A DNA stretch of 63,966 nt, counting the filler, from Reticulomyxa filosa (Eukaryota > Protista > Foraminifera): the NCBI GenBank assembly GCA_000512085.1. It is 22 parts of 22 records of this genome, joined end to end, with 100 filler letters (N's around TTAATTAATTAA, not from the genome) between each part and the next. Parts side by side here need not be neighbours in the genome. Positions count along the whole stretch, not along the records: positions 11,356 to 14,538 come from ASPP01035094.1; 21 more parts are not named here. The stretch is one strand, 5' to 3'. Below are positions 11,356 through 14,538 of this stretch, one piece after another. The notes below the pieces were generated by a model. The model did no database searches, was not told where the DNA came from, and saw only the letters and a list, made by a program, of their open reading frames with translations. Within the stretch, counting starts at the first letter, position 1; the number at the start of each line of letters is the position of its first letter. A program made the translations under genes and the position numbers.

Positions 11356-11702
11356 TCATCATCATCATTATTATTACAATTATTATTACAATTAACAGGG
11401 ATCATTTCATCTCCAACAGCCAAGCATCGAGGATACTTATCACTTGGTTCGACACAGCAATATGTATTCTTGTTTTTTACAAAAATGGGATGGTTGACTG
11501 TTGTCGTCAAAGTTTGGCCATTTGATAAATGAATGATGGCATATTCATTGACTTGATAAGTTTCCACGAGTCGAACGACTGTTGGTTCCAACGAATTCGT
11601 GTTGCAATTGTATGACATGATGGCATCTCCAATTTTGACCTCTTCAATTGTCTTTGTGTCCTTTTCGCTGATTGTGACCTATTTTTATTTTATCAATCCA
11701 AC

Positions 11703-11734
<32 letters not shown>

Positions 11735-12957
11735 GAAGTAGGTGCAAAAAAGGTCACTTAGTAAAAAAAAAAAAAAAAAACTCGAGTGCCAGCAAAAAAA
11801 CATCCTCCTCTTAGTCGAAGGATTAAATGAACAATACAACCAGTTCGGAGTTTGCAATCCACAATAGTGAAATGGTCATCCAGTTGTCTACCAGCGAATA
11901 CAAGTCTCTGTTGTTCTGGAGGAATGCCTTCTTTGTCTTGAATCAATGCTTTGGTTGCAGCAATGGTAGTGTGTGGGAACACAGAAATGGACATATCTTT
12001 GCCGGTCAATGTTTTAACCTTAAGGATGATTTCGCTTTGATCCATAAGCACCGGCACTTGAATAATCGCAATGACGCTCTGTTGCTTTTCTTTAATTGTC
12101 ATTTCACCTTCATTCTTCTTTTCGTCGGTATTGTTCATCTTGCGATGTTCGGTTAGTCGCTGTCCCAAGAAATCGGCTTTTATGCCATGTTTGTTGAAGA
12201 ACAGCTTTTGATTGCGACATCGAATTAGCTGTGCCGATGTGCCCTTGCTTGTGCTTACAATAGTCAGCACCGACGGAATGTTCCGAGATACTTGATAATT
12301 GTAAAGGGATATATTGAAAGGGACTTCTACATTATCTCCACTTGCTATTGGCAACATGCAACACTGGGATGACATGATCACATGTGTATCCTCCTTTTCA
12401 TTAAACAGGTTCATTTCCATTATCTTACCCGATCCATCTCGCAATGGATACGACATGTAATCGTGGTACTTTTTTAAATATTCACTCAGCGTTATTGTCT
12501 TAAATGTCTTCTTTTTGTCACTACTATTATCTGGTGCAATCAATTGCTCATTTCCTATCACCAATGGAATCTTTTCCATTCTTACATCCCAAGTCTTGTC
12601 GCTGAAATTTGGGTATCGAATCACTGGCATTCTGGCCTTGCCCACTTGCAATGTCATATCTGATATGTTCGGTCCCCAACTCGATTTCTTATTTCTTGCT
12701 GTATCTTCCCATGATACATTCACAATATCCAGTCCGGCTTTAATCGCACATGTTTTGGCCTTTGATGAACCTGTGGGAATGAAAGATTTACGTATATGCA
12801 CTTATGTAGATTTTTTTTTTTTTCACGCCTTTTTTTTTTTTTTTTTTGTGTAGAAAACTCTTCGTGTTTCTGTTTCTTAGTTTTACTTACTTGAGGCCAT
12901 TTCTTTTACAAGGTTAACAACATCTTGCTGGGATTTATCTTTAGGAGCTTGCGTCAT
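11356..12957 (-). CDS. Uncharacterised domain + ubiquitin-like domain (RLRGG) + intein-like Hint domain; 3' truncated by contig end
   Basis: Exons 12957-12891, 12770-11782 and 11678-<11356; GT-AG introns 12890-12771 and 11781-11679. The spliced protein reads MTQAPKDKSQQ...SWEDTARNKKSSWGPNISDMTL...IILKVKTLTGK...HLILRLRGG/CFFAGTRVTISEKDTKTIEEVKIGDAIMSYN...LSNGQTLTTTVNHPIFV...LAVGD. It contains Hint block A (CFxxGTxV) and block B (TxxH). Confidence 0.9.
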
Positions 12958-14404
12958 TTCAACGCTCGGAGGAAATATTCAAAAAAAAAATGTAACCAAA
13001 CAAAACAAGTCTTTTTGTTGTCTAGGGTAGTAGCTGTTCAACACATCAAGTACACCTTCTAAATGCCTCCCAATTTTACATTCCATATTCAAATGTTTTA
13101 TAAGCTGAACAAGGCGCAATAGAATGAAAAATTAACATTGATGTATTTATTGTCACTACTTGCCAGAAAGAACTTAGTTTAGTTGAAAAGACTGTTAAAT
13201 TCTATTTTGTCTTTTTGGAGCAGTGTACATCCTGCATGAGTGAGGGTGTTAATTAAATTAATTGGAAACTTTAAGCAAAAAAGGCTTTGCTATCGTAAAT
13301 TCAGTAAAAGAAAAAGCAATTCCAATATTACAAAATTTCACCATATTCATTTTCATGGTAGAACCAGTATGTGATATCTATTATAGATACAAATCAAACT
13401 GTTCTGACTCTAGAAGTTAAAAACAACCTAACAATAATTAAGTTGCTTCGAATAATATTCTGTGATATCCTTGTAGGATGTTCAAAAATTAAATATATCT
13501 TGACAATGTCTGACACATTGCTTACTAACAACAGCAGTAAACTCTTTGCTTGATTTGTATTTAAAAAACTGAAGAACATCACATATATCTGGTGTCTGAC
13601 AAACAACCAGATACTAATTTTGGTCTTGGATTATCGTTGGTGTTGTTGCATATGTAGAATGGGCCAACCAAACACACCAGCAATATTGTAATACAAAACA
13701 ATCGAAAGTATAAATAGAAAAAAGCTCAGAATTTATTGTGATAAAATTGTAATCTTTTCAGAATAAATTCATCTTTAATACAACATGCAATGTGGATACT
13801 TTCAAGGATACAAAAAAAATACGATTTATCACATTTTCAGCTATTTTTTGTTATTATATACAAACTGTTTGTTCTTTGAATACAAGTTGATACATTTTTT
13901 ATTGCAAAATTTGCTTACGCTATTTGCATATTTTTCCCTAATATGTGTAAATAATTGTAGCAATCTGCTGTACCGAAATTTCCATCGACTGCTTCCGAAA
14001 ATCAGTCTACATCATTGGCTGCTTCCATGCTAAATCTGTTGAAATATCGTTCCACTTCTTATTATCAAAATTTTCGTCTGCAATCACTTAAGCACGTACT
14101 CATTGTTTCAAATTTCTATTTCATTATTTTGTCTCTAAAGAACATGCAACCAATTTTCGACATAAATTCAGACTCAAATGTAGTAGCTTCTGCATTTAAT
14201 ACAGTTTTGTTACTGTTCCGGTATATTTCTGAAAATTCCACTTTCAGTTCGGAACAATCTTGACATGTGCTTTTTCTACCAGATGTTACAATTGATCCAT
14301 TATTGCTGCGGTCAAATTATTGATACTTGCATTGTGGTGTTTGGCTATATCCAAATAATTCTGATCATATATTGCGTCGCTATCATCTTGGATGAAAGCA
14401 GTTA

Positions 14405-14538
14405 CAGTAAGATAAAAAAGAAAGTTGACACCTAAAATGCAACCTTATAGAGATGATTGTATTTCTCCATGAAAAAATAACATTTAATCAAAATTTTTTT
14501 AAAAAATATATACAAATCGTGTAGTTTTTAAATATCAT
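14405..14538 (+). mobile_element. MITE family copy truncated by contig end
   Basis: TA|CAGTA...aaagttgacacctaaaatgc...tttctccatgaaaaaataacat...tacaaatcgtgtagtttttaaatatcat, similar to the 26981 and 10737 copies. Confidence 0.7.

Follow-up and report, generated by a model that had tools for sequence, protein, structure and literature searches.

A ubiquitin-like domain fused to a BUBL-type Hint domain as a predicted cassette within a two-part protein of the foraminifer Reticulomyxa filosa

Based on similarity searches, alignments and paralogue comparison, the foraminifer Reticulomyxa filosa quite probably encodes a single precursor protein in which a ubiquitin-like (Ubl) domain ending in Gly-Gly (GG) is joined directly to Cys1 of a Hint domain, with the two halves of a host protein on either side of this unit. 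The predicted order is the host N-terminal half (N-half), Ubl-GG, a BUBL-type mini-Hint running from Cys1 to a terminal His-Asn (HN), Gly-Ser and a linker, and then a Cys-rich finger with the host C-terminal half (C-half). The estimate of probability applies to this explanation as a whole, in which Gly-Ser, the linker, the finger and the C-half are placed from paralogues. The gene was examined in positions 11356–14538 (ASPP01035094.1) of the window, that is, the whole stretch of 63,966 nucleotides (nt) of R. filosa DNA that was analysed, and it is the only recognisable gene in that segment, with three exons on the minus strand.

Exon 2 spans 11782–12770. Its first part (12034–12770) encodes the N-terminal half, of about 245 amino acids (aa), of a widespread uncharacterised protein family; its second part (11803–12030) encodes a Ubl domain of 76 aa that ends in LRLRGG; and its last seven codons (11782–11802) encode Cys1 and the first half of Hint block A (CFFAGTR), the final codon being CGA at 11784–11782. 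Gly76 is GGA at 11805–11803 and Cys1 is TGT at 11802–11800, so that RLRGG is followed by Cys without a linker. Exon 2 is followed by intron 2 (11679–11781; 103 nt, GT...AG, phase 0), which contains homopolymers of the T19/A29 type, and by exon 3 (11356–11678), which is cut by the contig end. The translation of exon 3 starts at 11678 (VTISEK), reads VTISEKDTKTIEEVKIGD, includes TVNH and remains open to the contig edge at 11356; it provides what remains of block A, followed by the IEEVKIGD strand, by block B and by the beginning of a low-complexity N/D insert. The Hint of the window gene lacks roughly its C-terminal third at the contig end. An earlier note on this DNA had placed Gly76, Cys1 and the ends of intron 2 at these positions, all of which proved correct on the minus strand.

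Comparative evidence for the intron within the Hint

The exons were searched separately, and the join between them was judged from abutting alignment coordinates on one homologue, P0121, a Ubl-Hint protein derived from a transcript of the foraminifer Nonionella stella. Of the stretch P0121:500–700, residues 6–84 aligned to the end of exon 2 and residues 85–179 to exon 3, with neither gap nor overlap, and in this alignment Hint block A becomes complete across the junction of exons 2 and 3, with CFFAGTR aligned to CFIEGTK. The exon boundary at intron 2 recurs in the paralogous contigs L001 and L004. The paralogue RFI_14112 ends in RLRGGCFFAGTQ, after which its contig reads GTTTC and poly-T to the contig end, while a paralogous contig begins with poly-T, passes through AAAAAG and then reads VSVNEKETKAIEE (VSVNEK), which places the acceptor at the identical position.

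Compared with this last paralogue, exon 3 shows a proportion of nonsynonymous differences (pN) of 0.21 and a proportion of synonymous differences (pS) of 0.65, with a ratio of nonsynonymous to synonymous rates (dN/dS) of 0.16. Exon 3 is under purifying selection and is retained as coding sequence. Reading through intron 2 gives VFFFFFY followed by an in-frame stop, so that the protein would end at 11758; exon 3 can be maintained as coding sequence only if this stop-containing intron is removed, which supports the splice. The earlier proposal that removal of a 103-nt GT-AG intron joins two open reading frames (ORFs) is thus borne out, as far as sequence comparison goes, by the abutting P0121 alignments, the paralogue boundaries and the dN/dS value. 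The alternative of two separate genes for the two ORFs was rejected, as no in-frame start precedes exon 3 and the intron interrupts block A.

The Ubl and Hint domains

The Ubl domain matches the Pfam ubiquitin family PF00240 with E 8e-21 (74 bits against a cut-off of 25.4) and aligns without gaps to residues 4–76 of ubiquitin, terminating in RLRGG. Only 42 of the 73 aligned positions are identical, and Lys48 is replaced by Arg, Lys63 by Thr and Lys29 by Leu; the domain is therefore ubiquitin-like rather than ubiquitin itself.

Exon 3 alone matched the Hint, Intein_splicing, PT-HINT, Vint and intein_Nterm models at E 3e-6 to 6e-3. Its score against PF01079 was 27.5 bits (cut-off 29.7; E 2.7e-6), and since it covers only a portion of the domain, its scores stay under the curated cut-offs; the paralogue P0271 clears the Pfam Hint threshold with 34.6 against 29.7 bits. 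An exhaustive HMMER search with exon 3 returned 326 proteins at E≤1e-3, the best at E 1e-41, and a word-indexed protein search returned no matches inside its length range. Among structures in the PDB, exon 3 matched the bacterial intein-like (BIL) domain 2LWY at E 2e-4 and BIL2 of Tetrahymena (6Y75/6TMM) at E 0.011. A profile of related Hints matched 6Y75 at E 6e-41, a value reached by construction because Tetrahymena sequences were included in the profile, followed by 2LWY at E 7e-16 and then by mini-inteins.

Across the exon junction, block A (CFFAGTR/V...IEEVKIGD) aligns with block A of 20 homologues. The block B motif TVNH lies at 11501–11490, and its Thr60 and His63 are nearly invariant in an alignment of 21 related Hint domains (A2). 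Cys1, Thr60 and His63, which are all of the catalytic residues visible in the window, are intact. These matches and alignments agree with the earlier description of a Ubl-GG placed directly before Cys1 of an intron-split Hint with block A, IEEVKIGD and the TxxH motif preserved.

Paralogues and the host protein family

The part of the gene past the contig end was approached through R. filosa paralogues that reach the Hint end, namely P0271/P0122 (65–67% identical over the Hint), P0275 (contig L005) and P0128 (contig L003). A continuation of the window contig was looked for and not found; L005, which overlaps the last 30 nt with about 88% identity, diverges beyond that overlap and is therefore a paralogue. 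In three paralogues (P0271, P0275 and P0128), the Hint ends in FANGVLVHN, followed by Gly-Ser. Position +1 is accordingly Gly in all three paralogues that reach this junction, and never Cys, Ser or Thr. Beyond HN/GS, the paralogues carry no Ubl; a variable linker leads to a Cys-rich finger, then to a conserved segment (RVTLQYYKATSNG...ADFIGSLV) and finally to a helical tail. According to phmmer, this downstream part belongs to the family that also supplies the N-half before the Ubl, and is the C-half of that family. At the other side of the Hint, the junction RLRGG/CFFAGT is strictly kept between paralogues whose Ubl bodies have diverged, and CFFAGTR differs in P0002 at its last residue only. 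Since RLRGGCFFAGT and HN/GS are conserved among paralogues and their neighbours vary, both junctions appear to be under constraint.

One paralogous contig departs from this order. In L003 (ASPP01037429.1; 78–995, RFI_35660), the middle of the N-half runs almost straight into the middle of the Hint, so that the Ubl and Cys1 are gone and the HN/GS end and the C-half are present. RFI_35660 is probably a decaying copy or a misassembly.

The host N-half has 347 homologues at E≤1e-3, which gives a family of at least 347 clusters, and it matched no Pfam or NCBIfam model. Members that are full-length and cassette-less (P0005, P0287 and P0312) show both halves linked by a variable loop. Cassette-less members occur in R. 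filosa itself (P0300), in N. stella, Bolivina argentea and Elphidium margaritaceum, and in several Amoebozoa; the family also extends to a Marseillevirus, a planctomycete and a Bacteroidetes metagenome-assembled genome. The AlphaFold model of a full-length member has a predicted local distance difference test (pLDDT) score of 85.5 and a predicted template modelling (pTM) score of 0.82, and its sole low-confidence segment, residues 274–284, lies between the halves and coincides with the position of the cassette in R. filosa. By these comparisons, the Ubl-Hint unit is identified as a cassette inserted in the interdomain loop of a host protein, a loop that is disordered and links the halves in cassette-less relatives, and therefore not as a free-standing modifier precursor. 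The cassette-bearing form of the family was found in R. filosa only, within the length range searched.

The fold of the host family found no clear counterpart in the structural libraries used. The AlphaFold2 model of the N-half reached a pLDDT of 83.6, and Foldseek against the PDB gave no clear match, with best E values of 0.23 (N-half model) and 0.04 (full-length model). The wide VIA-align run scored at best Z 6.0, on generic FN3-like sandwiches, and a further run gave Z 4.1, so that no convincing structural match was obtained; in the ESM Atlas, the structure search stayed at TM <0.3 and the feature search returned no usable match. The invariant family residues include WED..R, GP.ISDMTL, the Cys in SSQAC.LP, and RVTLQYYK. 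Furthermore, fusions to CUE, PB1, SAM, Ubl or Cys-rich finger domains occur within the family and hint that it may be connected with ubiquitin signalling.

Relation to known Ubl-Hint and Hint systems

The earlier note had drawn a comparison with the BUBL genes of ciliates, which is apt because Tetrahymena thermophila BUBL1 (Q236S8; P0218) is itself a direct match of exon 3 at E 1e-6. The BUBL architecture in ciliates was reportedly described by Dassa et al. in 2004. BIL2 of BUBL1 (6Y75/6TMM) resembles the Reticulomyxa cassette in that a Ubl ending in RLRGG stands directly before Cys1, in its mini-Hint of about 145 aa ending in His-Asn, in the TxxH motif of block B, and in a residue at +1 that is not Cys, Ser or Thr. 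However, BUBL1 is an array in which a Ubl follows each Hint and which also carries an ADP-ribosyltransferase domain, whereas R. filosa has a single cassette, with the host N-half before it and, in the paralogues, Gly-Ser, the Cys-rich finger and the host C-half after it.

The closest relatives of the window Hint are BUBL-type arrays of other Foraminifera, N. stella and B. argentea (P0121, P0130, P0146 and P0155), at up to E 1e-41 and 37–44% identity. They come from the same phylum as R. filosa and share the junction GG/CFxxGTK. In contrast to the Reticulomyxa gene, they are tandem Ubl-Hint-Ubl proteins with near-canonical ubiquitin units, in which the Hint is followed by Ala/Ser-Met-Gln-Ile-Phe, and none among the matches listed carries host-family domains. 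More broadly, at least 20 of the clusters that match the Hint most closely share the junction RLRGG/CFxxGT, Tetrahymena BUBL1 included; where the end is present in those clusters, HN is followed by one residue and then by MQIF, the start of the next Ubl. The named sources of these Ubl-Hint matches are N. stella, B. argentea and T. thermophila BUBL1. The suggestion in the earlier note that this architecture might be new to Rhizaria did not hold, as many Ubl-GG/Cys-Hint-HN/Ubl arrays occur in foraminiferal transcriptomes (Nonionella and Bolivina); the new element is the cassette inside a host protein with a downstream partner that is not a Ubl. A limited literature search found no paper on Hint or BUBL genes in Foraminifera.

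In a maximum-likelihood tree, the Ubl-linked Hints, including both Tetrahymena BILs and the R. filosa copies, grouped together and apart from Hint-only tandem proteins (support 89/81). Proteins of the latter kind (P0123, P0129, P0131 and P0243) contain up to seven Hints arranged head to tail (...VHNKGG/CF...) with no Ubl between them, and form a separate tree group. In the N. stella arrays P0121, P0130 and P0146, an extra Ala or Ser separates the HN of the Hint from the Met of the following ubiquitin. PMC6133090 gives the insertion of a single residue at polyubiquitin junctions as an ancestral rhizarian character. Taken together with that character, the extra residue suggests that the foraminiferal arrays are derived from native rhizarian polyubiquitin and not from ciliate contamination.

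The A-type BIL domains, represented by 2LWY, the best single-sequence PDB match of exon 3, are likewise mini-Hints without an endonuclease, are located in variable regions and lack a +1 nucleophile; however, they are bacterial and have no Ubl linkage. Canonical inteins and the Hog-Hint domain of Hedgehog belong to the same superfamily and share the first step, an N-to-S acyl shift at Cys1. Contrary to the Reticulomyxa copies, canonical inteins require Cys, Ser or Thr at +1 and occupy conserved sites in essential proteins, and Hedgehog Hog-Hint has a sterol-recognition region in place of the His-Asn end. A Hedgehog-like sterol transfer was rejected, since the paralogues end in His-Asn and show no sterol-recognition region.

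Weighing the precursor

Several points count against the proposed precursor. A look for RNA runs listed none, the splice in R. filosa is supported by sequence comparison, and the intron 2 donor, GTTTTT, is weak beside the GTAAGT of intron 1; the paralogue intron also starts with GTTT. The C-terminus of the Hint and the downstream part of the window gene are taken from paralogues that share only the 65–67% identity noted above over the Hint, and the whole precursor stands on no single contig, as the assembly is interrupted within the intron rich in homopolymers. The internal deletion in at least one paralogue (L003) points to decay of some copies. Support for the BUBL-type clade is moderate, not strong. 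Sequence evidence shows the architecture, the splice and the family placement; catalysis by the foraminiferal copies and what becomes of the thioester are predicted from homology.

The weak donor and the homopolymer-rich intron, together with the deleted paralogue, would fit with there being no functional fusion at all, either because intron 2 is retained, which would leave the N-half-Ubl with a short tail to be trimmed by a deubiquitinase, or because the gene is a decaying pseudogene of a multi-copy family. This appears very improbable, however, given that block A is complete only after splicing, that dN/dS over exon 3 is 0.16, that paralogues share the exon boundary and the junction, and that the visible catalytic residues are intact.

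Proposed reaction of the cassette

A possible reaction course for the spliced precursor was proposed by homology with inteins, BIL domains and BIL2 of Tetrahymena BUBL. Cys1, aided by the Thr and His of block B, may carry out an N-to-S acyl shift that converts the Gly76-Cys1 peptide bond into a thioester. The terminal Asn could then cyclise and cut between HN and Gly, whereby the Hint would excise itself. The Gly76 thioester may be resolved by water, leaving a free GG end, or by an amine, which could be the new Gly α-amine, a lysine of the C-half, which probably remains associated with the N-half, or a lysine of another protein. Since Gly occupies +1, canonical transesterification would be excluded, and the thioester would have to be resolved by water, by an amine of the C-half or by a lysine of another protein; canonical intein splicing is accordingly unlikely in the R. 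filosa paralogues, judging from their junction residues. The Hint domain is probably catalytically active. If it is, cleavage, ligation in cis and conjugation in trans deserve roughly equal weight.

As its main function, the cassette could conjugate in trans independently of the ubiquitin-activating enzyme (E1), passing the N-half-Ubl from the Cys1 thioester to lysines of other proteins, to a ubiquitin-conjugating enzyme (E2) or to a small nucleophile, so that the host N-half would serve as a self-charging modifier. Such a role is possible but doubtful. BIL2 of Tetrahymena BUBL1, with the same junction, is reported by the providers of 6Y75 to conjugate the upstream Ubl to other proteins through an isopeptide bond without ATP (PMC8616854, section 2.4, citing Chiarini 2021), and the strict conservation of RLRGG/CFFAGT between paralogues despite the diverged Ubl body would fit the same use. 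However, the cargo would be a half-protein of 245 aa whose other half is encoded downstream, and the model has both halves as one body (pTM 0.82), which favours cis reactions or simple cleavage. Furthermore, the loss of Lys48 and Lys63 argues that the Ubl is not a chain-forming ubiquitin and counts against conjugation in trans. The idea of E1-free activation put forward in the earlier note is chemically sound by analogy, and it is not a new principle, having already been published for Tetrahymena BIL2.

To our knowledge, ATP-free, Hint-driven attachment of Ubl proteins has been documented so far for one ciliate locus only. A-type BIL domains without a +1 nucleophile have reportedly been proposed, by Dassa et al. 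in 2004, to use an aminolysis route, which is the chemistry that a splicing-like ligation in cis would need here. In this course, the α-amine of Gly+1 or a lysine of the C-half would attack the Gly76 thioester, and the host protein would be rebuilt with an internal Ubl in its loop. Gly-Ser after HN is kept in three paralogues while the linker beyond it varies, and the host halves probably fold together in the models; the relative P0039, which has a Ubl without a Hint in the same loop, resembles the expected product, although it could also have arisen by a separate insertion of a Ubl. The article by Dassa et al. in J Biol Chem (2004; reference 69 of PMC7765530) reports in its title that BIL domains lacking a +1 nucleophile splice. 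Nevertheless, aminolysis would be slow without a thiol or hydroxyl at +1, and ligation in cis is judged unlikely as the main outcome.

A wider proposal extends the course in trans from the gene to its history: a Hint from BUBL-type polyubiquitin genes would have made half of a two-part Reticulomyxa protein into a self-charging modifier, whose Gly76 thioester would be passed to lysines of other proteins or of its own C-half without E1, E2, ubiquitin ligase (E3) or ATP, and Foraminifera would possess an expanded Hint-driven system beside the canonical ubiquitin pathway. This proposal is offered tentatively and is rather unlikely.

The R. filosa gene and the foraminiferal arrays indicate that the Ubl-GG/Cys-Hint module is widespread in a second major eukaryotic lineage and that it can be transplanted as a cassette into a loop of an unrelated protein. 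If active, the cassette could deliver a large cargo domain as a covalent modifier or, alternatively, could be a natural case in which a nuclear eukaryotic protein is processed in an intein-like way with no nucleophile at +1. Whichever applies, the result would bear on the origins of ubiquitin conjugation and might find use in protein engineering, and the cassette also gives a handle on a large host family without known function or fold. The subject is of moderate to high relevance to specialists in ubiquitin and intein biology.

Other features of the gene and its surroundings

Exon 1 (12891–12957, minus strand; 67 nt) begins with ATG at 12957–12955 and translates to MTQAPKDKSQQDVVNLVKEMAS plus the first base of a Ser codon; its product matches the N-terminus of the paralogue P0002, and the donor GTAAGT follows directly. 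Intron 1 (12771–12890, minus strand; 120 nt, GTAAGT...CACAG) contains long A runs, and its removal restores the frame, A and GT together giving the Ser codon. The same intron is present in L002 (ASPP01003861.1), a near-identical second contig of the same gene; the best-matching proteins are RFI_04247 and RFI_14112.

Upstream of the gene, the region 12958–14538 is AT-rich and contains only ORFs of at most 82 aa. Within 11356–14538, no Rfam family and no transfer RNA were found, and upstream matches to bacterial-type promoters were at chance level.

Long A/T homopolymers fill the introns of the gene family, both in the window (11679–11781 and 12771–12890) and in the paralogous contigs, at the end of L001 and at the start and positions 655–720 of L004. 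Several contigs start or stop inside such introns, and therefore no contig carries the complete gene and the public annotation splits it into partial proteins. The public annotation of RFI_04247 excises 16 codons (VSRNIPSVLTIVSTSK) as an intron (about 905–955 of L002, corresponding to about 12215–12265 of the window). This intron call looks wrong because the excised residues include P165, V167, L168 and I170, which are conserved in the family (alignment A1).

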